A stretch of 64,000 nucleotides of DNA from IMG/VR virus record IMGVR_UViG_3300042566_001780, positions 227,688 to 291,687 of that record, one strand, 5' to 3'. Shown here in pieces: positions 3,132-51,751 of this stretch. The number at the start of each line of letters is the position of its first letter. The first letter of the stretch is position 1. The translations under genes and the position numbers were made by a program. The notes beneath the pieces are model-generated. The model ran no database searches. It had not been told where the DNA came from and saw nothing but the letters and a program-made list of their open reading frames with translations.

Positions 3132-5048
3132 TTACCGTAATTCGTGCCAAGCTCTAATTGGGCCATCTGGCAAATTATACCAGTGGTTAGGTGGAACCAC
3201 GGTAGTAATATGTTCCCATTCTCCAGAATCACCGTCTGCCTGGTACATGTTAACATAGGTGGTTGTTGAAACCCCGACATAAATATTACCCGATCCACCA
3301 ACATCAATCCAAATATTTAAAGCAATAGTTCTTCCCGTAGTATTCTGATACCACGTTCCTGCAGATCTAGTCACAGCTTGCCAAGTTTGTCCAACCCCCA
3401 ATGCATTAGCCGCTGTTCCTGCAGTTAGCGCGTTACCTGCATTAGTGGCATATGTGGCATTTGCACTGTTGCCAGTAATATCTATATCCCAGGTGCCACT
3501 TGCTCCGGTGCCGGTAAGACTAGGAGCACCAATAGTGTTGTAGCTGACTGTTCTTGCAGTATTTCCATTAAAGGTAGTACCACTTGCTACACCAGCTCCG
3601 CTATTATTAAATGTTAACGCTGCACTAGTTTGCGCGGTTATTGTTATGTTAGCACTTCCATTAAAACTTACACCATTAATGGTTCTAGCGTTAGCTAACA
3701 CGTTTGCAGTATTAGCGGCGATTGATGTCTGCGTAGATACTGCAGTAATTCTGCCTTTACCGTCAACTGTAATCACCGGGATTGCAGACGCAGATCCAAA
3801 AGTCCCATTATTTGCATTGACTGTTGTCAATGTCAACGTGCCGCTAACGTTTGCTGCCCCGTTAAAGCTGACTGACCAAGCTGCATCACCGGTGGCAGCT
3901 ATGGTTCTTGCGGTTGTTAGCTGATTTGCAGTATCGGCAATAGCAGCCGTTGAAATAGGAACTTGTACAACACCAGTTACCCGACCTTTATTGTCGACAG
4001 TGAGTTGCGGTATCAGCGTAGACGATCCGAAAGTACCAGCATTAGCATTTACGGTGTTCAATACCAAGTCAGAGCTGACATTTTCAGATCCATTAAAATT
4101 AACAGACCAAGCAGCATCACCAGTAGCAGCTATGTTTCTAGCTGTTGCGAGTGAATTTGCTGTAGCTGCAGTGACGGAAGTAGTAGAAACACCGGTAACT
4201 CTACCTTTACTATCGAGCGTAATGACTGGTATTAAGGATGAAGAACCATATGTACCAGCAGTTGCTACTTCAGCTAGTGTGAGAGCTGAAGAGGCATTTG
4301 CTGAGCCGTCGAATGTAGTAGACCAAGTACCGTCGCCTGTTATTGAAATCGTTCTTGCTGTAGCAAGTTTAGTGGCATTCGTGGCATTTGTTGCTGTTGA
4401 TGCAGATGTTGCTGAACCTACTGCCAGAGTTGATTGAGATGCCCAGGTTGGGGCTCCAGTGCCACCAGATAACAGAACCTGTCCTGATGCTCCGACACCG
4501 CTAATTGCATATGTAGATGCTGCGCTATATACAATTGCTCCTGCAGCAACCGAAGTAGAACCGGTACCGCCCTTTGCAACTGACAGGGTACCACCAATAT
4601 TAGAAAGATTTAAGTTCGCCTCAACTACATCTAGAATCGGGTTACCAGAAACACCAGATGGATTCGTAATACTAAGACGAGAAGAACCAGATACCAGGGT
4701 TCTAGATGCTGAAGTACCGACACCGGTTTTGACATAAAAACCAGTTACTGCTTGATTGATTAATGCTGATAATTCTGCATTGACCTGTTGGTAGGCTGAA
4801 GCTGGTAATCCACCTAGAGTGTCGGCGCCAATTTGGGAGCTGATTGATCTAACCCATCCCAAAGCAGGTTGATCACCAAATCCAGCATTAGCGTCTGGCA
4901 GCAAACCAAAGAAATACAGACCTGCCGATCCTTCTACCGAGTCTACAGTTTTATAGAACAGTGATCCATCGAAAGTTAAAGCGGGTTCTGGCAGTACAGA
5001 TCCGTATGGTATAATCGCGCCGCCGTTAAAGGTTTTATTTGTCGTCAT
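3132..5048 (-). CDS. Tail fibre protein
   Basis: 638 aa; three ATART..TGD..W...F.GSAN..TL..V..GT.GSS..IP..T.D.KGR.T repeats, ARTINGVSFNGSANIT, C-terminal LGVGQTWQAVTR tip domain. Confidence 0.88.
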   Translation of the reverse strand: MTTNKTFNGGAIIPYGSVLPEPALTFDGSLFYKTVDSVEGSAGLYFFGLLPDANAGFGDQPALGWVRSISSQIGADTLGGLPASAYQQVNAELSALINQAVTGFYVKTGVGTSASRTLVSGSSRLSITNPSGVSGNPILDVVEANLNLSNIGGTLSVAKGGTGSTSVAAGAIVYSAASTYAISGVGASGQVLLSGGTGAPTWASQSTLAVGSATSASTATNATNATKLATARTISITGDGTWSTTFDGSANASSALTLAEVATAGTYGSSSLIPVITLDSKGRVTGVSTTSVTAATANSLATARNIAATGDAAWSVNFNGSENVSSDLVLNTVNANAGTFGSSTLIPQLTVDNKGRVTGVVQVPISTAAIADTANQLTTARTIAATGDAAWSVSFNGAANVSGTLTLTTVNANNGTFGSASAIPVITVDGKGRITAVSTQTSIAANTANVLANARTINGVSFNGSANITITAQTSAALTFNNSGAGVASGTTFNGNTARTVSYNTIGAPSLTGTGASGTWDIDITGNSANATYATNAGNALTAGTAANALGVGQTWQAVTRSAGTWYQNTTGRTIALNIWIDVGGSGNIYVGVSTTTYVNMYQADGDSGEWEHITTVVPPNHWYNLPDGPIRAWHELR

Positions 5049-5093
5049 AGGTCAATCTGCCCTGGTAAGCATTCTAATCGAGGTGTTTCATTC

Positions 5094-5100
5094 TATTTAG
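5094..5100 (-). promoter_or_regulatory. Late promoter CTAAATA
   Basis: 46 nt upstream of tail fibre ATG 5048. Confidence 0.65.
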
Positions 5101-5213
5101 CAATTTTTGAAAGAAAAACCCTAAAGCTAGACATTGTGGTCTGCTCCTAAAATGAAGAACTTCTAGGTATCTGTGCATGTTAAAATTGCTTTTTGCACTT
5201 ACAAGGAGAACCT

Positions 5214-6194
5214 ATGACAGTGAATGCACAAGCTATCAACCCAACCTTCGAGCTCAACGCAGATTACCAAAAAGCCATATCTGATCTCATGAATCATGGC
5301 TACGAATCTGCTCCCCGCGGCCAAAAGACCAAAGAAATCATCAACTATTCATTCTCGCTGGTCAACCCACGCAATCGAATTGTTCATTTTCCAGATCGTA
5401 AAACTAGTCTAAAGTACCTACTTGGTGAGTTTATCTGGTACATTTCCGGCAGTGCAGACCCAAAGGGTATTCTTCCCTATGCAAAATTCTGGGACTCTAT
5501 TCGCAATCCCGATGGTACAGTAAATTCCAACTATGGTACTCGATTGTTTGGTCATCATCAAGACAGTCTGGTGACACGCGATGGACAAAAGATGTCTCAA
5601 TGGCAAGCTGTCATTAATATCCTCACTAAGGATAACGATAGCCGTCAAGCTATCGTGAATATTCATATGCCCAGCGATCGCTGGGATGGGAATAAAGATG
5701 TTCCATGCACCATCTCGCTGCAATTCCTAATTCGTGATTGGCGTCTGCATATGATCGTCACTATGCGAAGTAATGATGTCATTATGGGTACTTCAAATGA
5801 CATCTTCCAGTTTACTATGCTGCAGGAAGCTTTGGCATTGGAGCTTCGTAAAACTATGCCTGCTTTGGAACTCGGTTATTACTACCATAACGCTGGGTCT
5901 CTCCATATCTACGAGCGTCACTTTGAAATGGCCAAAGGAATCATGGAAGATAATCGAAAGCTTGAGCTTTCAATGCGGCCAATGGATTCATTCTCGGATA
6001 ATGTGCTGACCGGATTGGTTGGTGTTGAAGCAGCTTGGCAACATGCTGGAGCACCCAAAGATTTTGACTTTGCTAAAGTTGGAGCATGGCAATTGCTAAC
6101 TCCATACTGGCAAGATCTCGTTTTGATGTGTTTTGCTGATGATCATTCTGCAATGCATCGAGTTTTTGCTATTCCGGAAGACGAGGAACATTGA
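5214..6194 (+). CDS. Thymidylate-synthase-fold dCMP hydroxymethylase/hydroxylase (T4 gp42-like)
   Basis: AAGGAG RBS then ATG 5214. DSRQA, PCTISLQFLIR, MRSNDVIMGTSND (Asp where dUMP-specific ThyA has Asn), GSLHIYERHF. A canonical thyA is present separately. Confidence 0.8.
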   Translation: MTVNAQAINPTFELNADYQKAISDLMNHGYESAPRGQKTKEIINYSFSLVNPRNRIVHFPDRKTSLKYLLGEFIWYISGSADPKGILPYAKFWDSIRNPDGTVNSNYGTRLFGHHQDSLVTRDGQKMSQWQAVINILTKDNDSRQAIVNIHMPSDRWDGNKDVPCTISLQFLIRDWRLHMIVTMRSNDVIMGTSNDIFQFTMLQEALALELRKTMPALELGYYYHNAGSLHIYERHFEMAKGIMEDNRKLELSMRPMDSFSDNVLTGLVGVEAAWQHAGAPKDFDFAKVGAWQLLTPYWQDLVLMCFADDHSAMHRVFAIPEDEEH

Positions 6195-6195
6195 A

Positions 6196-6462
6196 ATGTC
6201 AGGTGGATCCTTTGACTATGCTTATTACAAAATTTCAGATTTTGGTGATAGTCTTGAAGCTAAACTTCTTGCTTATGATCCAGATGATTGGAACACAGAA
6301 TTTGTCAAGTCACTGGATCCATCTACTGTAGCACTTTTGAAACAGATTGCTAAAGAAGCCCAAACGCTTGGACCAAAGGCAAGAGCAGTCGAATGGCTAT
6401 TTTCCGGTGACTATGGAGAGCAAACTTTTCTTGATGTCATTAGCAAAATTGAACAAAAATGA
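6196..6462 (+). CDS. Hypothetical protein (MSGGSFDY family)
   Basis: ATG 6196, coupled to neighbouring genes. Confidence 0.6.
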   Translation: MSGGSFDYAYYKISDFGDSLEAKLLAYDPDDWNTEFVKSLDPSTVALLKQIAKEAQTLGPKARAVEWLFSGDYGEQTFLDVISKIEQK

Positions 6463-31625: not shown

Positions 31626-32861
31626 ATGGCTGTACCAGTTCTAAAAGCTTTCAAATATCGAATATATCCAAATAAGGAGCAGGAGTCCTACCTGCTCCAA
31701 AATTTTGGATGTGTTCGCTTTGTTTGGAACCAGTTGGTAGCCAACTTCAATTCATTCTCAAAAGAAGGTCCAAATCGGCCAATGAATGAAAAGATATTGA
31801 AGGATAATGAACTATATCCTTGGTTAAAAGAGGCGATAAGTTATGCATTGCAGCAAAAGCGAATGGATTTTGATGAGCTGAAGAAACAGTTCTTCAATAA
31901 AGGTCGTAAAGTCAAATTAGGCAGGCCCAAATTCAAAAGACGAGGTAGAAATGAGTCATTCAGAATTCCTGCTGCTTCAATGTACCTAGAAAATTTTGAC
32001 AAAATCAAAGATGGGCGTATCAAATTGCCGAAAATGTCGCCTATGAAAATTGTCATAGATCGGCCTTTTACTGGCAAACCCAAATCGGTCACAGTCTCTA
32101 AAAATGCAAGTGGACAATATTTTGTTTCAATTTTAGTCGAAGAAGACATAGAGTTGAAACAAAATACCGGTCGCTCAATCGGTATTGATCTTGGTTTGAA
32201 AGATTTGCTCATCTTAAGTGATGGCACAAAAGTCTCCAATCCAAGATGGTTTAGAGAAAACCAATCTAAACTAAAGCGAGCACAGCAACATTTAAGTCGC
32301 AAGATAAAAGGTTCAAATAGATACAATAGGCAGAAAATCAAGGTAGCCAAAATCTACAGAGATGTGACAAATCAACGAAAGTTTGTTTATCACAACTTGT
32401 CAAGTTGGCTAGTTGATAACTATGACACTATTTGTACAGAGAACCTTAAAGTGAAGAATATGGTGAAGAATCGCAGTTTGGCAAAGTCGATACAAGATGC
32501 AAGTTGGTCTACGTTCATATCTATGTTAGATTACAAATCTCGTTGGTACGGTCGCACATTCCATAAGATAGACACCTGGTTCCCATCTAGTAAGACATGT
32601 TCTTGCTGTGGACATAAAATGGAATCGATGGATCTATCTGTGAGAGAATGGACTTGTCCATCTTGCAATACGCACCATGATCGTGACTTAAATGCAGCCA
32701 CAAACATACTAAATGAAGGTATTAAAGACCTTTATGACATGACCTCGGCTGAATTAACCGAGTACAGACGTGGAGAGGCAATAAGACCCAAGGAAGTTCT
32801 TCCAAAGGCAGCTTCAGTGAAACGTCTAGTTAGTTTTATAGATTTTTATAAAACGGCGTAA
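31626..32861 (+). CDS. tnpB: RNA-guided endonuclease TnpB
   Basis: KAFKYRIYP, RuvC motifs GIDLG / ENL / DRDLNAA intact, zinc finger CSCC..CPSC. Confidence 0.93.
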   Translation: MAVPVLKAFKYRIYPNKEQESYLLQNFGCVRFVWNQLVANFNSFSKEGPNRPMNEKILKDNELYPWLKEAISYALQQKRMDFDELKKQFFNKGRKVKLGRPKFKRRGRNESFRIPAASMYLENFDKIKDGRIKLPKMSPMKIVIDRPFTGKPKSVTVSKNASGQYFVSILVEEDIELKQNTGRSIGIDLGLKDLLILSDGTKVSNPRWFRENQSKLKRAQQHLSRKIKGSNRYNRQKIKVAKIYRDVTNQRKFVYHNLSSWLVDNYDTICTENLKVKNMVKNRSLAKSIQDASWSTFISMLDYKSRWYGRTFHKIDTWFPSSKTCSCCGHKMESMDLSVREWTCPSCNTHHDRDLNAATNILNEGIKDLYDMTSAELTEYRRGEAIRPKEVLPKAASVKRLVSFIDFYKTA

Positions 32862-41629: not shown

Positions 41630-42967
41630 AACCAATAGCTTATAGATTCCAAATCAAATCTGGTGATTCATGGCAAACTTATCATGCTTCAAATTTGCCA
41701 AAGAATGTCATTCTCAGCAATGTTGTGCCATTATTTGAAAAACCTGTATTTGATCAAGCTTTTCTGAGAACGGTGTTTGAATCTAGTTTGAATTTCAATG
41801 ATTTCTATTCTCAGTTATGTAGCATTCAAATAATGGATCAAGAGCCAGGGGACATCGTGAATAGGCTACTTGCTAGAGCAGCTATTCGAAGGCAAATTTC
41901 TTCAAGAAAAAGCGTTGAGCTCAATGAAAAAGATCGTATTGCAGATCTTCTTGAGGAAGCAGCACATGAAATTATGAAGTTAAGAGGAAAATGACATGAG
42001 CAACAGCCTATCGGCTTTTTTAAAAGATCTTGCGGACTACACAAAAAGATTTATTTTCATGGGCAACAGCGATTATGCAAAGCAAATTATTGAATCAATC
42101 GAAGAACTAAAAAGCCAAGTTGTAGCTCTTTCTAAGCCGAGCCTATTTGCAATTTGCAAACTAAAAGTAGAAAATTCTGCTCAAGAAAAACAAGCATTTG
42201 AGTCGTGGGTGAAGTCAGTTTCGGGAGAAAGTGCTGATTTTTCAACAGATGAAACTGGAAATTATCAGCATCCCGAAATGTATGCTGCTTGGTTAGCGTG
42301 GAACGCAAGAGTGACACAGCAAAACTATGTTAAAATTCCCTATGCAAAGCTAAAGCTTAAATCCATTGACAATGGAATGCCGGACTGCCCGCATTGCGGA
42401 AACAATCGTCAAGTTTGGCGAAATCAGATTACGAACAAGCTCACATGTCACCGTGCATATTGCAACACTGTCATTGAAGAAATGGAAACAAAATGATCAA
42501 GTCTTTTACTCTGAAGCAAATTCCTTCCCATGTTGATCTGGAGCCAGGTGTTACGGTCTACGAGTCTGCTAAGTACGATTATGGTTTGGCAAGTGATGAC
42601 AGTCGATTCACCGGCATTCATCATGTTTCAGTGACTCTTGATCCAACTGGTGACTATCCATTTTTTACGGTTCCTGCACATTTCTTGGAGCCGATTGAGA
42701 ATGTCACAACCTAATTGCCTGCATATTCTTCAGGTTGGCAGATCTTTTGTGGCACTCAAAGATAGTGCTTCTGCAAATCGCTATATAGACCATTATGGAC
42801 TGTCAAAACAAGCAGTCCATCTTGGATGCAAAGAAGTCCATCAATCCTACATTGACATTTTTGAAAAGTGTAAAGTTGATAGAATTGGCTTTGAGCATCT
42901 AGGTCTTTTGCTGCAACCCTCATTTACACCGTTTTTCAAACATGTCCCAACAACCAAAAGTAACTGA
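41626..42967 (+). other. Four small hypothetical ORFs (41626-41994, 41996-42496, 42493-42714, 42701-42967)
   Basis: Coupled ORFs; 41996 ends in a CPHC..C....C zinc ribbon. Confidence 0.55.
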
Positions 42968-44714
42968 CTACGCCGTTCTTGATGAGATTGAACACGTACG
43001 CCGTCGTACTGGCATGTACGCGGGTTCTACTGAACTGCAAACAGCTTCGGACTGGATTTATGATCCTAATCTAAAGAAGATGGTCAAGAAGCAGGTGAGT
43101 TACATTCCTGCTCTTATCAAAATTTTCTCAGAAATTCTCGATAATGCAATCGATGAACACCGTCGTGCTCCAAACGTGCTTGATGCTATTCGGGTAGATT
43201 TCACTGCAGAAGGCATTATCACAATCACTGATAATGGTCGCGGTATTCCAGTTGAAGTCCATCCGCAAACTGGAAAATATATTGCAGAAACTGTGTTCAC
43301 GACGCTGCGTGCAGGTTCTAACTTTGACGATACAAAAGATCAACAACTTGTTGGCACCAATGGCGTTGGTAGTACACTGACATCTATCTTGTCTACCATG
43401 TTTCGCATCGAATCATGTGATGGCAAGAAGGTGTACACGCAAGAATTTAGAAATGGTCTTCGGGAGCGTGATGAACCGAAGATCAAATCTGACAACAAGA
43501 ATCGTACGAAAATTACATTCAAGCCAGATTACGAATTCTTCAAGTTGAAAGGTTTGGACGCCGATCATGCAATGAAGATGACCAAGAAGATTGCAGATGC
43601 CGCTGCATGTAACCCGGGTGTAAAGTTCTACATTAACGGTGATCGAATTGCTGTTAAGGATTTTGGTGACTACATTTCACTATACACTGATGAGTTTGTG
43701 TATGACGATACTCCTGATTGGAAGGTTGGCATCTCTCATTCTGATGGATTTGAGCAAATTAGCTTTGTCAACTCGGTTGAAACATACCAAGGTGGTACAC
43801 ATGTAGCATACGTAATGGATCAAATTGTTGAAGCCATTCGAGCATATATCAAGAAAAAACATAAGGTAGAAGTAAAGCCTGCTGACATCCGCAATCATAT
43901 GCGGGTGTATATTAGTGCCAACGTGAATCGGCCTAAGTTTTCTTCTCAAACAAAAGAGAATATGATTTCTCAATATGGAACTTACAAGACTTCTTGGGAA
44001 GTTCCTGATAAGATGATTCAGAAGCTGCTGAAGTCGCCAATTATTCAATCTGTGCTTGATTGGGTAGAAGCGAAGCAGAAAGCTGCAGAACTTGCAGAAT
44101 TGCGTAAACTCAACAAAGAAGCGGCAAAAGCAAATCCGCGTCGAGTTGAAAAGTTTGATGACGCCATTGAAAAAGTCAATAGGCACCAGTGCCAGATTTT
44201 TTTTACGGAGGGGGACTGCCTTTTTGAGGACACTTTGATTTATTCTCAAGGCAATGGGAATATTAAAATTAAAGATTTGCAAATAGGTGATTTTGTCCTA
44301 ACTCACCAAAACAATTTCAAACAAATAGTTAACAAAACTACTAAGTTAAAAGAGTGTATAAAATTTTGTCTGGAGGATAATAAAATTTTAATTTGTTCAA
44401 AAGAACATAAAATGTTATGTTATTCTAGAAATGACAAATGTTTTGGCTGGGCAACAGCTGAATACATAGCAAATAATCTAGATTCTTTCTATTTGGTAGA
44501 AAATGAGATAATTTCCAAAAGATGCATGGGGGACGAGCTAATAAGTAAGAACCTCCATGATAACGAATTTATTTTAGAATTTGGCAGTGGCCAAACATGG
44601 GAATCTTCACCCAACCACAGGTGGATGGTTTATCAATTAAAAACAAATAGTTTTGTAGTAGTGTCTACAGAAGATATGGAACTTGGCGATATGTTGTTAA
44701 TGAGTATGTCATAA
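42942..44714 (+). CDS. DNA topoisomerase II large subunit, fragment 1 (GHKL ATPase + start of TOPRIM) fused to N-intein
   Basis: EHVRRRTGMYAGS, EILDNAIDE, DNGRGIP, GTNGVG, FFTEGD|CLFEDT (intein Cys1 at 44217). Confidence 0.93.
   Translation: MSQQPKVTDYAVLDEIEHVRRRTGMYAGSTELQTASDWIYDPNLKKMVKKQVSYIPALIKIFSEILDNAIDEHRRAPNVLDAIRVDFTAEGIITITDNGRGIPVEVHPQTGKYIAETVFTTLRAGSNFDDTKDQQLVGTNGVGSTLTSILSTMFRIESCDGKKVYTQEFRNGLRERDEPKIKSDNKNRTKITFKPDYEFFKLKGLDADHAMKMTKKIADAAACNPGVKFYINGDRIAVKDFGDYISLYTDEFVYDDTPDWKVGISHSDGFEQISFVNSVETYQGGTHVAYVMDQIVEAIRAYIKKKHKVEVKPADIRNHMRVYISANVNRPKFSSQTKENMISQYGTYKTSWEVPDKMIQKLLKSPIIQSVLDWVEAKQKAAELAELRKLNKEAAKANPRRVEKFDDAIEKVNRHQCQIFFTEGDCLFEDTLIYSQGNGNIKIKDLQIGDFVLTHQNNFKQIVNKTTKLKECIKFCLEDNKILICSKEHKMLCYSRNDKCFGWATAEYIANNLDSFYLVENEIISKRCMGDELISKNLHDNEFILEFGSGQTWESSPNHRWMVYQLKTNSFVVVSTEDMELGDMLLMSMS
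44217..44711 (+). mobile_element. Split intein, N-terminal half (165 aa)
   Basis: CL..DT.I, IKIKDLQIGDFV, block-B-like S.EH / S..NH motifs, then a stop codon. Confidence 0.88.
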
Positions 44715-45887: not shown

Positions 45888-46331
45888 ATGTTTGAGAAAC
45901 TTCTGGATGATTTTGAAACTATTGGGAAAAGATTGGTCAAAATTAATGCTGTAGACTTTGCAGGTCTTGCCAATACAGTTGATATTGAGGTTGAAGATGA
46001 TAATTCATTTACCCTATCAAACGGCCTCATTTCTCATAATTCTGCCCGCTCTTCCATTCAGGCTGCTCGCGGTAAAAACAAGTTTATTGGATCTTTTTCT
46101 CTTCGGGGCAAGCCGCTTAATGTATATGATGCCGAAATTAAGGATGTGATTGCAAATGCTGAATTTGCAAACATGCTTGCTGTTACAGGATTGCAACTTG
46201 GAGAAAAAGTTGAAGCTGAGTCTGATGGAAATTGGCACATCATTGAAATTGACGGTAAAGACGTATTGGTTAATGAAAATGATTTTATTAACATTAACGG
46301 TGATCTTATTAAGGTTAAAAATTTGATCTAG
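45888..46331 (+). CDS. C-intein (51 aa) + topoisomerase II large subunit, fragment 2
   Basis: VDIEVEDDNSFTLSNGLISHN|SARS (Ser+1 at 46041), then LRGKPLNV...TGLQLGE. Confidence 0.92.
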   Translation: MFEKLLDDFETIGKRLVKINAVDFAGLANTVDIEVEDDNSFTLSNGLISHNSARSSIQAARGKNKFIGSFSLRGKPLNVYDAEIKDVIANAEFANMLAVTGLQLGEKVEAESDGNWHIIEIDGKDVLVNENDFININGDLIKVKNLI

Positions 46332-46373
46332 ACTTTGACGGTTATTGCTAAATACATTTTTGAAAGGATAAAA

Positions 46374-47423
46374 ATGAAATGTACTTTATGCAATAATGAA
46401 ATACCAAGCATCTATAAAAATAGAATTGCATGTTGTATTAGTCCGTGTGAGTCATTTTTCATAAAACCAAGAACAATATTATGGAAAATAAAAGTATTGG
46501 GCTTCAATGAACAAAAAGTCCTAGATGAAAACCGTAAAAGAACGCAAAAAGCTGGAAATACGAGAAAATCATTGGGGCTTTCTAAAGGTGCAAATAATCC
46601 AAATAGCAAACAATATTTGTTAAATCTAGGTAAGAGTGAAGATGAAATAGCACAATTTCATAAATCTACTGCCAAAAAAATGGTGGATACAAAAATAAAA
46701 GATGACTTTTATAAGGTAAAATCTAATAATCCATATTCTTATGAATACTGGATATCTCGCGGATATTCAAATGAAGAAGCTAAAAATAAAATAAGATCTA
46801 AAAATCATAATTGTGCCGAATACTGGATATCTCGCGGATATTCAAATGAAGAAGCTAAAAAACTAAGTTCAGAAAGTGCTGATACTAATTCATTAAAAGC
46901 AAAAATCAAAAGACATAAAAATGAAGGTCATAAAAAATATATGGAAACAAAAAATAAAATGTCTGGTAGTTGGAATCCAAAATCTGCAAATAGTGTTAGT
47001 TTTTCATCTTCACAATCAGCAAATGCCTTTTTTAAGAAAATATATAAATTTGTTAGGCGGTTGGGTTTCACTAGACATGAGATGACGTTTAAATTAAATT
47101 TCGGTAAAGAATTTTGGATTAAAAAAGATAAAAAAATTTATTTTTATGATTTTGTTTTGCACCCCCTAAGATTGATAGTAGAATTCAACGGCGAACATGT
47201 TCATGTTGATCCTGGTTTATCTTTAGAAGAAAAATTAAAATGGAAACACGCGTTTTCTAAAATGGATGCTTTTAGTATTGAAGAATATGATAAGCAAAAA
47301 AATATAGCAGCTGCTGCTAGAGGGTATAAAATAATTTATGTCTGGTATAAAGATCAGGAATCTGGATTTAATTCTATTGTTGATTTTTTAAAGGAAAAAT
47401 ATAATCATGGTACAAAAGATTAA
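46374..47423 (+). CDS. Free-standing putative homing endonuclease (Vsr/DUF559-like C-terminus)
   Basis: YDF......IVEFNGEHVH ... D..K...A...GY.IIYVW; YW.SRGYS.EEAK repeats; CTAAATA at 46348-46354. Confidence 0.75.
   Translation: MKCTLCNNEIPSIYKNRIACCISPCESFFIKPRTILWKIKVLGFNEQKVLDENRKRTQKAGNTRKSLGLSKGANNPNSKQYLLNLGKSEDEIAQFHKSTAKKMVDTKIKDDFYKVKSNNPYSYEYWISRGYSNEEAKNKIRSKNHNCAEYWISRGYSNEEAKKLSSESADTNSLKAKIKRHKNEGHKKYMETKNKMSGSWNPKSANSVSFSSSQSANAFFKKIYKFVRRLGFTRHEMTFKLNFGKEFWIKKDKKIYFYDFVLHPLRLIVEFNGEHVHVDPGLSLEEKLKWKHAFSKMDAFSIEEYDKQKNIAAAARGYKIIYVWYKDQESGFNSIVDFLKEKYNHGTKD
46743..46861 (+). repeat. 44-bp perfect direct repeat (46743-46786, 46818-46861)
   Basis: GAATACTGGATATCTCGCGGATATTCAAATGAAGAAGCTAAAAA twice, encoding EYWISRGYSNEEAK. 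Confidence 0.9.
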
Positions 47424-47990
47424 AGTTAAAGCAAAAAATGTTAAGCCAACTCCCGATCAACTGCGAACTTATGTTCAGCAACAAGGACGTTTGACGACTC
47501 GAAATACGAATTTGCGTTTTGGTAAACTGATTGTGCTATCAGACCAAGACCTTGATGGATAGCTTCGGCTATCCATATTACATACACATTTAAAGAGTTA
47601 TTTGGATTTCATGTTTCTTCACTGCTGCTTTCCTTTTGGGCGAAGTACTGGCCAGAGTTGTTCAAACTCGGCATGGTATATCGGATGAACACTCCGCTTT
47701 ATATTGTCAAAACCAATAAGGGCGAACTTTTAGAATTCTTCACTGAAGAAGATTATGAGCGCTGGGCAGCAAAGGGTATCAAACATAAAGCTGACTATTA
47801 CAAAGGTCTTGGCGGTTTTGATACGGAAACTTTTGAGCGATTTATTGAGAATCTTGATAAGTATCTTGTTAAAATTACAGAGCTTGAAGCCCAAGACCTT
47901 GCAAAAATTGAGCTAGCTTTCTCTAACAAAGAGCAAGATGCTCGCAAAGAGTGGCTTGAGGATATTCGATACTTTGAAATTGAAGATTGA
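47407..47990 (+). CDS. Topoisomerase II large subunit, fragment 3 (T4 gp60-like), decoded by a 47-nt translational bypass: join(47407..47559,47607..47990)
   Basis: MVQKIKVKAK...LRFGKLIVLSDQDLDG-TAG, resuming in another frame as FHVSSLLLSFWAKYWPELF...YYKGLG...RKEWL. This restores the DxDxDGxH TOPRIM motif. Confidence 0.9.
47555..47606 (+). promoter_or_regulatory. Ribosome bypass signal (take-off hairpin, coding gap, mini-SD, landing codon)
   Basis: ATGGATAGC-TTCG-GCTATCCAT stem-loop; GAG 47595-47597; GGA 47604-47606. Confidence 0.88.
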
Positions 47991-47995
47991 AAATT

Positions 47996-49336
47996 ATGCT
48001 AAAAACAGAATCAACTGCAACAGAATTTATTGACGAAAAGCTTCGTCTTTACTCTGCTCACTCCAACATTCGAGGTATACCATTTATTGGAGACGGCTTC
48101 AAACAAGCTCACCGAAAGGCTGTTTGGGGTATGCTTAAACGTGGTGAAAATGCCGACAAAGATACTATTGAAAGAATTTCCGCAAGGTCCGCCAGTGACA
48201 CAAACTACGCGCATGGCGTAGGCTCACTTGAAGGCACAATGGTTGGACTGGCGCAGGATTATGCTGGCAGCAACAATATTCCATTGTTTGAAAAGTTTGG
48301 TCAATTTGGTGATCGTCTCAACAAAAAGCCTGCAGCCTCTCGCTACATTAAAGCAAAGCTTGCACCTTACTTTCGTCAGCTTTTCCGCAAAGAAGATGAT
48401 CTCATTTTCGAGTTCATGACTTCAAATGGAATGGAAGTTGAGCCAAAATACTTTACTCCTCTTTTGCCACTTGTTCTGGTAAACGGAGCTGAAGGTATGG
48501 GTACAGGTCATAGCACCTATATTATGGCCTATAATCCAGAAGAGATTAAAACCAACATCATTAAGCTGCTTGATGGCAAGAAACTTAAACCCAACACAAT
48601 GCTTCCATGGTGGAAGGGGTTTAATGGTTCTGTTAGCCGTAATCCAGAAACTAGTCAACTTGAAATTACAGGTTGTTACAACATTAAGGATGGGCGTACA
48701 CCAATTTTGACTGTTACTGAGCTTCCTATCGGCATCCAAAGTGATCAATACAAAGCTCATTTGGACAAGCTTGAAGATCGTGGAATTATTCTCAGTTACG
48801 ATAATCTTTCTGACAAGCGCGGTTTTGAATTCGTTATTCGGATTCCAAAATCCACTGCAGAAAAAACTGATGAAGAAATTAAAAAGCTCTTCAAACTGGC
48901 ATCAAAAGAAACAGAGAACTTGACTGTTTGGGATGGTGATGGTGTCCTTAAACGGTATGAAAATGTCGAGTCACTTCTTGAAGAATGGGTTGAATGGCGT
49001 GTTGCGCGATTTGAGGATCGTCGCCAAGCTCTAATGAAAAAGACCAAAGAAGACATTCTTTGGGCAAGTGAAAAATACAAGTTCATTATTTTCTATCTGA
49101 AGAATGTCAACTTCTTCCGTGATAATGAAACTAAAGTAATTGTTGAGAGGCTTCAAACTGAAGGTTTTACCCGCATTGAAGATCTTCTAAGCATGCCAAT
49201 GCGATCACTCACTAAGCAAAAGATTGAAGAACTCAAGAATGAAGTTGAAAAACTGAAAGTCATTTTGAATGATCTTGAAAATGACAATGCAACTTCAATG
49301 TTTAAACGAGATCTCAAAGAGTTGAAAATAGCATGA
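47996..49336 (+). CDS. DNA topoisomerase II medium subunit (T4 gp52/GyrA-like)
   Basis: DGFKQAHRK, YAHG..SL, AASRYI (catalytic Tyr), LVNGAEGMGTG, ELPIG. Confidence 0.93.
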   Translation: MLKTESTATEFIDEKLRLYSAHSNIRGIPFIGDGFKQAHRKAVWGMLKRGENADKDTIERISARSASDTNYAHGVGSLEGTMVGLAQDYAGSNNIPLFEKFGQFGDRLNKKPAASRYIKAKLAPYFRQLFRKEDDLIFEFMTSNGMEVEPKYFTPLLPLVLVNGAEGMGTGHSTYIMAYNPEEIKTNIIKLLDGKKLKPNTMLPWWKGFNGSVSRNPETSQLEITGCYNIKDGRTPILTVTELPIGIQSDQYKAHLDKLEDRGIILSYDNLSDKRGFEFVIRIPKSTAEKTDEEIKKLFKLASKETENLTVWDGDGVLKRYENVESLLEEWVEWRVARFEDRRQALMKKTKEDILWASEKYKFIIFYLKNVNFFRDNETKVIVERLQTEGFTRIEDLLSMPMRSLTKQKIEELKNEVEKLKVILNDLENDNATSMFKRDLKELKIA

Positions 49337-49555: not shown

Positions 49556-50380
49556 ATGAATGCTTATGAAACGCTAGGTGTCAAACCTGGGACTTCTGCT
49601 GATGATGTCAAAAAGGCATATCGCAAACTTGCTCAAAAATACCATCCCGACAAATATCAAGATGGTCCTGAGAAAATAGAAGCAGAAAAGAAATTCAAAG
49701 AGATTCAAGCTGCATATGAAGAGGTCACAAACCCAAAGCAGCAAAAGAATATGTGGGGGCATGGAAACCCCAATGGCTTTACCGAAATGGATGATATTAT
49801 TCGTGCATTTCGTGAAGCGCATGAAGGTAATTTTCACCAGCGCCGATCAGTCCCAATGATCAACATTCGGCTGTCTCTTAAAGAGGCATTCGAAGGTAAA
49901 AAGATTATGTTGAATATTGATGGAAATAGCATCAATTATCAGATTCGGCCAGGTCTACCATCCGGTGTAGGCTTCATGGATGAAGTGCCTGTTGGTGATG
50001 GTAAAAAGCAAATCAATGTTCGAATTGATATTGTCGACCAAAAGTTTGCATTCAGGCAAATTGGATCTTTTGATGGTATCAATTTTAGCGGCGATCTTGA
50101 AACCGTCATTGATGTTGATGCACTTGATATTCTGTCTGGAAGCTGGATTGAAGTTCAGGATTTCCTTGGAGAAAAGCTTCAAGTGCGAGTACCAAGCGGG
50201 TTCAATGGTGGGCAGATGCTGAAAGTAGCTAATAAAGGTTACTACAACTGGAAGGGTCAAGGATATACAGATCGCGGCCATATGTTTCTTCATGTGCGCC
50301 CGGTCTTCAAAGCAAAGCATGAAATCAATAAAGATAAACTGAAGAAGCTTTATGACGAAGTCTGCGGTGCAAATGCCTAA
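49556..50380 (+). CDS. DnaJ/CbpA-like co-chaperone
   Basis: J domain with HPD; C-terminal DnaJ_C-like region; no zinc finger. Confidence 0.88.
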
Positions 50381-50891
50381 TGACATTTCAGGTATTTCTT
50401 TTTCGCAAAAGAAATTGGTGAAAGTTATTTCTGGAGGTCAGACTGGTGTAGACCAAGCTGGTCTTTTTGCCGCTATTTCTTGCGGATTGGAAACCGGTGG
50501 GCAAGCTCCTGAAAACTATTTAACCAGTGCAGGCAATTTCCCAATGTTAGAATTATTTGGATTGACTGCCGATGGAAATTACTATGAGCGCACTGGGGCT
50601 AATGTCAAAAATTCCGATGGTACTATCATTATTGCGGAAGATTTGACCTCTGCAGGTTCTAGCGCCACAAGGCGCTTTTGCGCTCGAATAAATAAACCAT
50701 GCTTAGAAATCGAATTACAAAATTTGACCTTCACTACAGCTCATGTGATTGAAATTTGCGAATTCATCACTGCTAAAGAAATTTCAATTTTGAACGTCGC
50801 CGGGAATCGAGAGCGCTACAAAAATAATGCAGTTTTTTCTTGCGCAAAAAAATTGTTGACAGAAGTTTTCACCACACTTAAGCAATTATGA
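50373..50891 (+). CDS. SLOG / putative molybdenum-carrier-like protein
   Basis: [31 protein letters not shown]. Confidence 0.82.
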
Positions 50892-51751
50892 CTTCACAAA
50901 CTTTCGAATATAATCTCCTCAACCTGTATCATGACATTCTTCAGAATGGCGATGAGCGAATTGATCGCACGGGCGTAGGCACTCTTTCAGTTTTTGGTCG
51001 ACAACTTCGAATCAATCTTCAAGATGGATTTCCGTTAGTCACTACTAAGAAGATGGGATTTAAGTCCATTCTGGCAGAACTTCTTTGGTTCATTGAAGGT
51101 AGCTGCGATGAGCGCCGCCTTGCAGAAATTCTACATGGGACACGTGATGTGTCCAAGAAAACTATCTGGACTGCAAATGCCGAAGCTCCATACTGGAAGT
51201 CTAAAGCAAATTTTGAAGGTGATTTAGGTCGCGTGTATGGTGTGCAATGGCGTACATGGCATGGTCATGATGATGTTTATGTTGATCAACTCCAAAATAT
51301 CATTAATACCCTCAAGACAGACCCAACAAATCGCCGCATGATTTTATCTGCATGGAACGTAGGTGAGCTTGACATGATGGCACTTCCGCCGTGCCATATG
51401 TTTGCGCAGTTTTTTGTGTCACAGAAAAAACTGTCATGTCAAATGTATCAGCGCTCAGTTGATAGTTTCTTAGGTCTCCCATATAACATCTCATCTTATG
51501 CACTGCTCACGCATATCATTGCAAAGATCTGTGATCTAGAAGCTGGTGAGCTTATTATGTGTCTTGGCGATACTCACATCTACAAGAATCACATTGACCA
51601 AGTCAAACAACAAATTGCTCGTACGCCATTTGAATTGTCGAAGCTTTCTATTTCTGATAGCATAAAAAGTCTTGATGATCTGAAGATGGAACATTTTTCT
51701 ATTACTGATTATCAATATCATCCTGCTATAGTTGCTGAAATGGCAGTGTGA
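50888..51751 (+). CDS. thyA: Thymidylate synthase
   Basis: DRTGVGT, YGVQWR, MALPPCH, YQRSVD.FLGLPYN, GDTHIY.NH. Confidence 0.95.
   Translation: MTSQTFEYNLLNLYHDILQNGDERIDRTGVGTLSVFGRQLRINLQDGFPLVTTKKMGFKSILAELLWFIEGSCDERRLAEILHGTRDVSKKTIWTANAEAPYWKSKANFEGDLGRVYGVQWRTWHGHDDVYVDQLQNIINTLKTDPTNRRMILSAWNVGELDMMALPPCHMFAQFFVSQKKLSCQMYQRSVDSFLGLPYNISSYALLTHIIAKICDLEAGELIMCLGDTHIYKNHIDQVKQQIARTPFELSKLSISDSIKSLDDLKMEHFSITDYQYHPAIVAEMAV

Follow-up and report, generated by a model that had tools for sequence, protein, structure and literature searches.

A candidate gene 60-type bypass cassette in a homing element of a jumbo-phage topoisomerase gene

Results

The interrupted topoisomerase gene

The stretch of DNA analysed here (the window) is the final 64 kb of the IMG/VR contig IMGVR_UViG_3300042566_001780 (291,687 bp), whose source is a jumbo phage of at least 291 kb. 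The window carries a gene for the large subunit of topoisomerase II (Topo2L) that is broken into fragments, the last of which, fragment 2, is the equivalent of gene 60 of phage T4. Fragment 2 is itself interrupted, within its Toprim motif, by a short gap between two GGA codons. Gene 60 bypassing, in which ribosomes hop over such a gap, is the textbook extreme of programmed recoding; to our knowledge it was known from T4 alone for three decades, and we know of no experimental proof of the mechanism outside T4. The parts of fragment 2 are as follows.

47407–47559, plus strand: start of fragment 2, 51 codons for a leader and a Toprim motif replacement
47516–47550, plus strand: stem-loop predicted on the 5' side of the take-off hairpin, perhaps equivalent to the 5' stem-loop of T4
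47555–47576, plus strand: take-off stem-loop of 9 bp with a UUCG tetraloop, its 5' arm holding GGA and UAG
47560–47606, plus strand: 47-nt coding gap (T4 convention), comprising UAG, the remainder of the hairpin, the A/U-rich spacer with GAG, and the landing GGA
47607–47990, plus strand: rest of fragment 2, FHVSSLLLSFWAKYWPELF...YYKGLG..., the C-terminal part of Toprim (Pfam TOPRIM_C, E 2e-18), ending in TGA

Structure of the cassette

The first open reading frame (ORF; 47407–47562) encodes 51 amino acids with the C-terminus ...LSDQDLDG; its last sense codon is the take-off GGA at 47557–59, followed by TAG at 47560–62. A perfect inverted repeat of 9 bp (47555–63 / 47568–76), with a UUCG loop closed by a C-G pair, holds both triplets in its 5' arm. 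Folded alone, this hairpin reaches -12.6 kcal/mol (z = -5.7), and none of 200 shuffled sequences folds as well. The 27-nt spacer between the hairpin and the landing codon (47577–47603) is 81.5% A/T and contains GAG, a mini Shine-Dalgarno sequence, at 47595–97; 6 nt further on stands the landing GGA at 47604–06. From 47604 the frame reads GFHVSSLLLSFWAKYWPELF... and stays intact for 128 codons until the TGA at 47988–90. It differs in frame from the 51-codon ORF (frames 0 and 1), and the earliest ATG, GTG or TTG in it is a TTG at 47658. The gap measures 47 nt by the T4 convention, which counts from UAG through the landing codon; 44 nt lie between the two GGA codons in the window, versus 47 in T4. 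The original prediction, made by a model from the letters of the sequence, had described this arrangement: an ORF ending in SDQDLDG with GGA and then TAG, the perfect 9-bp C(UUCG)G stem, the A/U-rich spacer, GAG 6 nt before a second GGA, and resumption in another frame without a usable start. Each of these elements lies exactly where it had been placed, and the predicted gap of 47 nt is right by the T4 convention.

The 64-kb window has a single match to the composite pattern GGATAG-N25-45-GAG-N6-GGA, against a mean of 0.05 in shuffled sequence, an expectation computed without demanding a hairpin or a protein context. The sole further GG within the gap belongs to a GGC inside the hairpin. UAG is the rarest stop codon of the window, terminating 7 of 78 long frames. 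Upstream of the take-off codon, the segment 47490–47556 folds at -14.1 kcal/mol (z -2.4, 4 of 200 shuffles as good), and the stem-loop predicted at 47516–47550 may correspond to the T4 5' stem-loop. The take-off hairpin has no T-run 3' of it and is therefore not terminator-like. A terminator scan of 46200–48200 gave five hairpin-plus-T-run sites versus 0.7 expected from shuffles; the take-off hairpin is not among them, and four of the five lie on the minus strand inside coding sequence.

Removal or bridging of the 47 nt in the RNA, by splicing or editing, is compatible with the sequence taken alone. We give this explanation very little credit: an Rfam search of 47300–47800 found no intron or other RNA family, and 47 nt is far below the size of a self-splicing intron. 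The homologous T4 insert reportedly stays in the mRNA and is bypassed in translation, as Huang et al. are said to have found in 1988.

Uninterrupted relatives

Protein searches were run with the two coding pieces separately, never joined. The Topo2L of Pseudomonas phage pf16 is unbroken, reading LRFGKIVQLTDADADG-SHIAGLF...WPELF, and the two pieces of the window align to it without an indel. Eight closer jumbo-phage contigs (L041–L048) also have an uninterrupted gene; the C-terminal piece of the window, starting at the landing residue, is 70–79% identical to theirs, and all eight read ...QLRFGKLVVLSDQDLDG-FH[IV][ST]SL.LSFWAKYWPELF. Together with pf16 they share a continuous LRFGK..L[ST]D.D.DG-[FYS]H... 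In BLASTP the window pieces are colinear on the proteins of these relatives, as are residues 1–426 of the upstream fragment 1a. One parental Gly (residue 522 in L042, residue 507 in L046) corresponds both to the final residue of the 51-aa ORF and to the residue that opens the landing frame. Alignment with relatives lacking the gap had been proposed as a check of the original prediction, and in the eight relatives and pf16 both Gly codons map to this single Gly. The insertion thus lies at the Gly of the Toprim DxDxDG motif, the same position as Gly46 of T4. By these alignments, exact restoration of the protein would be achieved by a hop from the first GGA to the second alone.

DNA searches with 46300–48100 and with 47407–47990 against 50,697 phage records returned nothing in either near or distant mode; the phage stands outside the GenBank-derived collections.

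Selection on the landing frame and the gap

A search with the 51-aa piece alone recovered six homologous ORFs of 48–54 aa in other assemblies, all ending in ...DLDG, and every one of their contigs (L089–L094) carries a cassette. The closest, L091, is a contig from another sample with 87–93% DNA identity to the window; assembled independently, it has the same GGA/GGA cassette with one substitution. The window contig is a metagenome assembly, which might raise the suspicion that the insert arose in sequencing or assembly. The insert is not such an artefact, because L091 carries the same cassette; homologous cassettes also occur in the other-sample assemblies L089, L090, L092, L093 and L094, and the insert is homologous to the T4 gap. 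The chance of an artefact is negligible.

In the 51 codons before take-off, the window and L091 differ by eight synonymous and one non-synonymous codon changes. The 27 codons after landing show eight synonymous and no non-synonymous changes in the landing frame; read in either other frame, the same stretch has seven changed codons, none of them synonymous. This pattern places the stretch immediately beyond the landing codon under protein-level selection, in a lineage that already carried the cassette. The gap differs at 1 of 44 nt and the flanks at 16 of their 78 third-codon positions (Fisher p = 0.005); the lower rate of change in the gap indicates that it is constrained as RNA or DNA. The 51-codon ORF of L091 is preceded by a strong AGGAG.

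These comparisons bear on the idea that the downstream part is translated by internal initiation, at TTG 47658 or ATG 47673, with the 51-aa peptide serving as a separate subunit. Both start codons are indeed in frame, and gene callers annotate TOPRIM_C ORFs of 100–102 aa in the relatives. Every relative conserves GFHVSSLLLSFWAKYWPE, however, and initiation at either codon would lose it. Between the window and L091 this stretch, which precedes the earliest in-frame start available (47658), has five of the post-landing changes, each of them synonymous when read in the landing frame. Internal initiation would also leave the matched codons, the hairpin and the GAG spacing unexplained, and we regard it as very unlikely.

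Conservation and covariation in thirteen cassettes

Manning and Atkins (2022, bioRxiv 10.1101/2022.08.31.505936; hereafter the preprint) described 28 genomic and 13 metagenomic cases of gene 60-type insertion, all in Topo2L at the same site and with a C-terminal extension (CTE) of the upstream fragment, an N-terminal extension (NTE) of the downstream fragment and a cassette. We compared 13 cassettes: those of the window, T4, MGS11 of the preprint (L087), L049, L051, L079, L080 and L089–L094. The original prediction had called the arrangement a rare natural variant; it is less rare than that, for the preprint has dozens of cases, this architecture included, and 11 more were found here.

All 13 cassettes have a GGN codon followed by UAG. 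Each also has a UUCG hairpin whose 5' arm includes the take-off codon, with 99.1% of cells paired and only 1 of 500 column shuffles as good. The landing codon is in every case readable by the same tRNA, the pairs being exclusively GGA/GGA, GGU/GGU and GGU/GGC. The wobble base of the take-off codon covaries with its stem partner and with the landing codon: the combination is GGA/U/GGA in the window, L091 and T4, and GGU/A/GGU or GGC in the rest. An A:U pair at the wobble base is replaced by U:A, a compensatory change, and the remaining changes in the 3' arm are exclusively C-to-U, preserving G.U pairs. In 11 cassettes GAG or AGGA stands 5–6 nt upstream of the landing codon. By eye, no GAG/AGGA-type triplet stands 5–7 nt ahead of the presumed landing codon in L080 (142–216) or L079 (2–70); the end of the contig truncates L079, and its landing site is uncertain. 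L093 (175–246) combines a T4-type CC-UUCG-GG tip with an AGGA Shine-Dalgarno sequence, while its clade neighbours have C-UUCG-G and GAG, so that the length of the hairpin tip varies within one clade.

Take-off and landing codons are 38 to 47 nt apart, a spread that includes each of the three frame relations; two in-frame stops are present in L090. These observations are relevant to a conventional frameshift or stop readthrough near GGA-UAG, with the gap translated as an insertion. In the window the landing frame is open from 47556, and 15 aa would be inserted by a shift at the stop. Such an event seems most improbable: there is no slippery heptamer, the relatives lack any such insertion in a strictly spaced motif, and readthrough in the take-off frame would produce unrelated sequence. 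Because the gaps of the homologues span all frame relations, some with two in-frame stops as in L090, frameshifting and readthrough are excluded as a general explanation by the sequences compared, and a frame-independent hop alone would fit all of them.

A scan of IMG/VR for the exact hairpin (GGATAGC.TTCG.GCTATC) gave 37 loci, unrelated save for the window's own contig; many of these hairpins lie just 3' of stop codons. A slightly looser scan found one more true cassette, that of L049, and a metagenome hairpin scan yielded 38 loci with five true cassettes. In a tree of the C-terminal piece (128 aa), cassette-bearing and empty-site genes are interspersed, and the tree is too poorly resolved to tell a single entry of the element into this clade from several.

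The leader and the Toprim motif replacement

Residues 1–35 of fragment 2 form the element-encoded NTE, which by analogy with T4 would act as a nascent-peptide signal. It is followed by a 16-aa replacement of the Toprim motif, LRFGKLIVLSDQDLDG (47512–47559). These residues, 36–51 of the 51-aa piece, are 94% identical to the uninterrupted gene of L042. Positions invariant in the alignment are K6, Y22, D46, D48, D50 and G51. Y22 sits 29 residues before take-off, and this distance is 29–31 in all seven aligned sequences. The preprint lists as conserved NTE positions an invariant Tyr (T4 Y16), Q19, V22, R24 (R/K), Y33 (Y/F) and T40 (T/S). Positional counterparts, assigned by eye in the multiple alignment, are Q25 for T4 Q19, R28 for R23/R24, F38 for Y33 and S45 for T40.

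The homing element

The genes that surround fragment 2 are listed below; homing-endonuclease genes are abbreviated HEG.

42942–44714, plus strand: fragment 1a of Topo2L (Pfam HATPase_c and DNA_gyraseB), ending in TAA
42942–44216, plus strand: extein residues 1–425 of fragment 1a, the ATPase and transducer domains up to ...FFTEGD
44217–44711, plus strand: predicted N-terminal half of a split intein, beginning at Cys426 and followed by TAA
44777–45886, plus strand: HEG1, a free-standing 369-aa ORF between the intein halves, in frame 2, a probable homing endonuclease
45888–46331, plus strand: fragment 1b, comprising the C-terminal intein half, Topo2L extein and CTE, then TAG
45888–46040, plus strand: predicted C-terminal intein half, residues 1–51 of fragment 1b, ending ...SHN
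46041 to ~46214, plus strand: Topo2L extein SARSSIQAARG...GEKVE, colinear with relatives reading EGDSAR...
~46215–46328, plus strand: element-supplied CTE, homologous to the tails of MGS11 and T4 gp39
46335–47423, plus strand: HEG2, a putative Vsr-like homing-endonuclease gene of 362 aa, with a 17-nt overlap with the 51-codon ORF
47987–49336, plus strand: topoisomerase II medium subunit, the gp52/GyrA-like partner (Pfam DNA_topoisoIV, E 5e-80)

The upstream fragment ends in a tail, ...DGNWHIIEIDGKDVLVNEND..., that is absent from the uninterrupted relatives. This CTE, ...DGNWHIIEIDGKDVLVNENDFININGDLIKVKNLI, aligns with the tails of T4 gp39 and MGS11, and the match of T4 gp39 to the upstream fragment, CTE included, has E 1e-18. 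The gap DNA can be aligned with the T4 gap, while the surrounding genes share no detectable DNA similarity. The two have the same DxDxDG site, a gp39-like tail and an endonuclease gene between the fragments; on these grounds the sequences identify the window cassette as a homologue of the T4 cassette, in the same kind of homing element, and not an independent invention.

HEG2 occupies the position of mobA in T4 and is itself not MobA. Across its entire length it shares 38% identity with the MGS11 endonuclease (E 7e-69), and both proteins give sub-threshold Pfam DUF559 matches (E 0.02). Searches of HEG2 in Pfam, NCBIfam, PDB sequences and PDB profiles found no significant family. Its structure model has a mean predicted local distance difference test score (pLDDT) of 74, with PvuRts1I, AbaSI, Vsr and a DUF559 protein as top folds, all weak (E 5e-3 to 0.8, template-modelling score ~0.4). 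HEG2 is plausibly a Vsr-like nuclease. By analogy with T4, the gap probably breaks the endonuclease target site and would make the carrier immune to its own enzyme. In L051 (Ga0209229_10000005; 4712–6244, minus strand), the ORF between the fragments encodes 510 aa with an architecture unlike HEG2, matching NCBIfam vsr (E 9e-5) and, weakly at its C-terminus, the XF1762 family.

The endonuclease gene is present in the window and in L092, and absent from L089, L090 and L091, which keep the cassette; in L091 (1609–1620) the HEG2 region (46330–47400 in the window) is missing as a clean 1.07-kb indel. Homing elements decay, and with the endonuclease already gone from three lineages the cassette could be a relic: translation would terminate at UAG, fragment 2 would not be made, and the phage would manage without an intact Toprim or use host enzymes. 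The preprint estimates the T4 bypass to be only ~50% efficient. Decay of this sort is nevertheless very improbable for the window, since the post-landing frame is intact for 128 codons at 70–79% identity to the uninterrupted relatives, the changes relative to L091 there are purely synonymous, and conservation is higher in the gap than at synonymous sites. The signals of the cassette also persist in lineages without the endonuclease.

A split intein in the upstream fragment

The upstream Topo2L fragment is, by its sequence signatures, a 'fractured gene' with a split intein at EGD|SAR. The junctions are ...TEGD|C... at residue 426 of fragment 1a and ...SHN|SAR... at residues 51/52 of fragment 1b. 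The C-terminal half matches intein_Cterm (TIGR01443) over residues 32–52 of fragment 1b with 25.5 bits, against a cut-off of 15.6. The N-terminal half gives a sub-threshold NCBIfam intein_Nterm match at residues 426–492 of fragment 1a, and weak Pfam Hint_2 and Intein_splicing matches. The two halves are parted by stop codons and a frame-2 ORF, the flanking fragments being in frame 0. None of the eight empty-site relatives has the intein, and they read EGDSAR continuously. L089, L090 and L091 appear to retain adjacent split intein halves without a HEG1-type ORF.

HEG1 and HEG2 both match phrog_22677, and the two are marginally similar in the putative nuclease core. Pfam and NCBIfam gave no match for HEG1 and PDB sequence and profile searches nothing significant; it is probably a second homing endonuclease.

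Genomic surroundings

The window has a G+C content of 40% and encodes functions of replication and nucleotide metabolism, among them helicases, a clamp-loader-like ATPase, thymidylate synthase and an RNA ligase. The start of the medium-subunit gene overlaps the stop codon of fragment 2, and the order of these two genes recurs in L089 and L090. Downstream of the topoisomerase genes the clade-wide order is a DnaJ-domain protein, a cpYpsA-family protein and thymidylate synthase (window 49556–51751; L089 8398–10891; L090 3092–5313), which makes the L089 and L090 contigs syntenic relatives. The cpYpsA label comes from precomputed Pfam matches in L089 and L090. The gp52-like (GyrA-like) subunit of L090 (1144–2901) has 585 aa, compared with 446–449 aa in L089 and the window, and its faint Intein_splicing match suggests an intein in the partner subunit too. 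A 411-aa ORF at 31626–32861 of the window matches the PHROG transposase family phrog_506 (E 4e-128) and may be an insertion-sequence-type transposase within the phage replication module.

Discussion

The locus, in our view, is highly likely to represent a mobA/gene 60-family homing-endonuclease element whose insertion point is the Toprim motif of a jumbo-phage Topo2L gene, with a gap that is bypassed as in T4. By that analogy, ribosomes very probably pass over the gap to give one polypeptide. A hop of the gene 60 type had been put forward in the original prediction, and it draws support, at the level of sequence, from the empty-site relatives, from the exclusively synonymous changes in the landing frame of L091 and from the signals found in the 13 cassettes. 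The anatomy of the cassette, its homology, the empty sites and the pattern of selection are direct observations. The hop itself, its efficiency and its dependence on the leader would follow from the experiments on T4; intein splicing, endonuclease activity and immunity are likewise expected by analogy.

On this bypass reading, the element would have split the Topo2L gene, given the upstream fragment a C-terminal tail and supplied a putative Vsr-like endonuclease gene. The downstream fragment would have gained a new start, the 35-aa leader, a replacement copy of LRFGK...DQDLDG and the 47-nt non-coding cassette. After translation of the 51 codons, peptidyl-tRNA-Gly would stand on the GGA at 47557–59, and UAG, which is decoded slowly, would occupy the A site. 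Un-pairing of the anticodon would be promoted both by the leader within the exit tunnel and by formation of the C(UUCG)G hairpin at the A site. The ribosome, holding the peptidyl-tRNA, would then slide across the A/U-rich spacer. The product, ...DQDLDG-FHVSS... with a single Gly, would join the upstream fragment, itself put together from 1a and 1b by intein trans-splicing, and the gp52-like subunit. An active large subunit would then need trans-splicing of 1a and 1b, the ribosomal hop and non-covalent assembly through the tails supplied by the element.

Several points weigh against this interpretation. The leader is just 18% identical to that of T4; BLASTP of the two gave no alignment, and their relationship is visible in the multiple alignment alone. 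The leader has no counterpart of T4 V22, which the preprint lists as highly conserved. The nascent peptide had been predicted to be a different one: it is indeed divergent, as these figures tell, and not unrelated, the Tyr, Q, R, F/Y and S/T positions being kept. Folding predicts no significant stem-loop beyond the landing site (z -0.8); a weak downstream stem-loop is also reported for clade 11 of the preprint. A tRNA gene search of the window found none, and the supply of a GGA-reading tRNA, the Shine-Dalgarno pairing and the speed of UAG decoding in the host are assumed. The evidence from synonymous changes comes from one close pair and 27 codons.

It is possible, though somewhat short of likely, that the jumbo-phage clade holds a living, polymorphic population of gene 60-type elements. 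This possibility is raised by the varying presence of the endonuclease gene, by the interspersion of cassette-bearing and empty genes in the tree, and by the switch of the window/L091 lineage to GGA/GGA from GGU/GGC, which the hairpin matches with a compensating change. If it holds, the putative Vsr-type element would still be homing between jumbo phages. The clade would then be nature's own mutagenesis experiment on the take-off/landing rule, on gap length (38–47 nt) and on the leader, carried out in hosts far removed from E. coli. It would also provide an example of a single enzyme dependent on a ribosomal hop, on trans-splicing of an intein and on the joining of split pieces.

The value of the locus lies in natural variation and in annotation. 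Seven cassettes of one jumbo-phage clade are added to the catalogue, two of them with GGA/GGA outside the T-even phages. The GGA/GGA pair with its compensating stem change is natural support for the rules that the two codons must match and that the take-off codon must sit in the hairpin. Gene callers break the gene up, leaving a truncated TOPRIM_C ORF and an orphan one of 51 aa; recognition of the cassette corrects the annotation of an essential replication enzyme.

Comparison with known systems

The T4 gene 60 bypass is reported to lie within a mobA element, in the order gp39 / mobA / gene 60 (Huang and colleagues in 1988 and Bonocora and colleagues in 2011 are said to have described it). The window shares with T4 the gene and the codon (the Gly of Toprim DxDxDG), the GGA take-off and landing codons, the UAG after take-off, the UUCG hairpin that holds the take-off codon in its 5' arm, the GAG 6 nt before the landing codon and the A/U-rich spacer. 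The alignable gap DNA, the homologous upstream tail and the endonuclease gene between the fragments are also common to both. The T4 gap is 50 nt long, against 47 nt in the window; its hairpin tip is CC-UUCG-GG rather than C-UUCG-G, its leader has 46 aa instead of 51, and its endonuclease is the HNH enzyme MobA, where the window has a putatively Vsr-like one. T4 is a T-even phage, whereas the window comes from a jumbo phage with a topoisomerase closest to that of Pseudomonas phage pf16, and the split intein in the upstream fragment is a feature of the window.

Two further systems share single aspects. The Byp elements in Magnusiomyces capitatus mitochondria are reportedly 27–55-nt inserts over which ribosomes hop, according to work ascribed to Lang and colleagues in 2014. 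They resemble the window cassette in their matched take-off and landing codons and the poorly decoded next codon; they differ in being unrelated in sequence, numerous per genome and mitochondrial, with no such Shine-Dalgarno or nascent-peptide signal. MobE in nrdA of phage Aeh1 is another case in which a homing endonuclease splits an essential gene and added tails permit the pieces to reassemble, but it has no bypass cassette. 'Fractured genes' with split inteins and free-standing Vsr-like endonucleases are said to have been described by Dassa and colleagues in 2009.

The closest parallels are in the preprint, which presents the gene 60 bypass as belonging to a spreading mobile element and places the family site at the Gly or the preceding Asp of Toprim DxDxDG, within one codon. 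The endonuclease between the fragments is there a MobA HNH enzyme in most clades and a VSR or GIY-YIG enzyme in some metagenomic ones. In clade 11 it is replaced by a putative VSR enzyme and the host gene is pf16-like; in MGS5 the upstream fragment is also split, by intein halves around a VSR gene. In the preprint GGA/GGA occurs in the E. coli phage clade alone, so that the window and L091 are its second occurrence. The sequences of the window, the contig identifiers of the related loci and the subclade motif SFWAKYWPE are absent from the supplementary files of the preprint, and literature searches found no later paper on this clade. The window and its six relatives are new cassettes, in a new host clade, of an already described family; the mechanism is not new.

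By sequence the window belongs to the Vsr-type-endonuclease clade of pf16-like phages, clade 11 (MGS11 and MGS12), with which it shares the putative Vsr-type endonuclease, the C(UUCG)G tip, the pf16-like Topo2L and homologous CTE and NTE. MGS11 differs in having GGU/GGU, 40 nt between the codons and a fragment 1 without an intein, against GGA/GGA and 44 nt in the window. With MGS5 the window has in common an upstream Topo2L fragment interrupted by intein halves that flank an endonuclease ORF. Compared with MGS5 and the 'fractured genes', the endonuclease ORF of the window is in a separate frame and the intein is split at the gene level. The window joins two features of the preprint in one gene, the clade 11 element of putative Vsr type and a split intein like that of MGS5.

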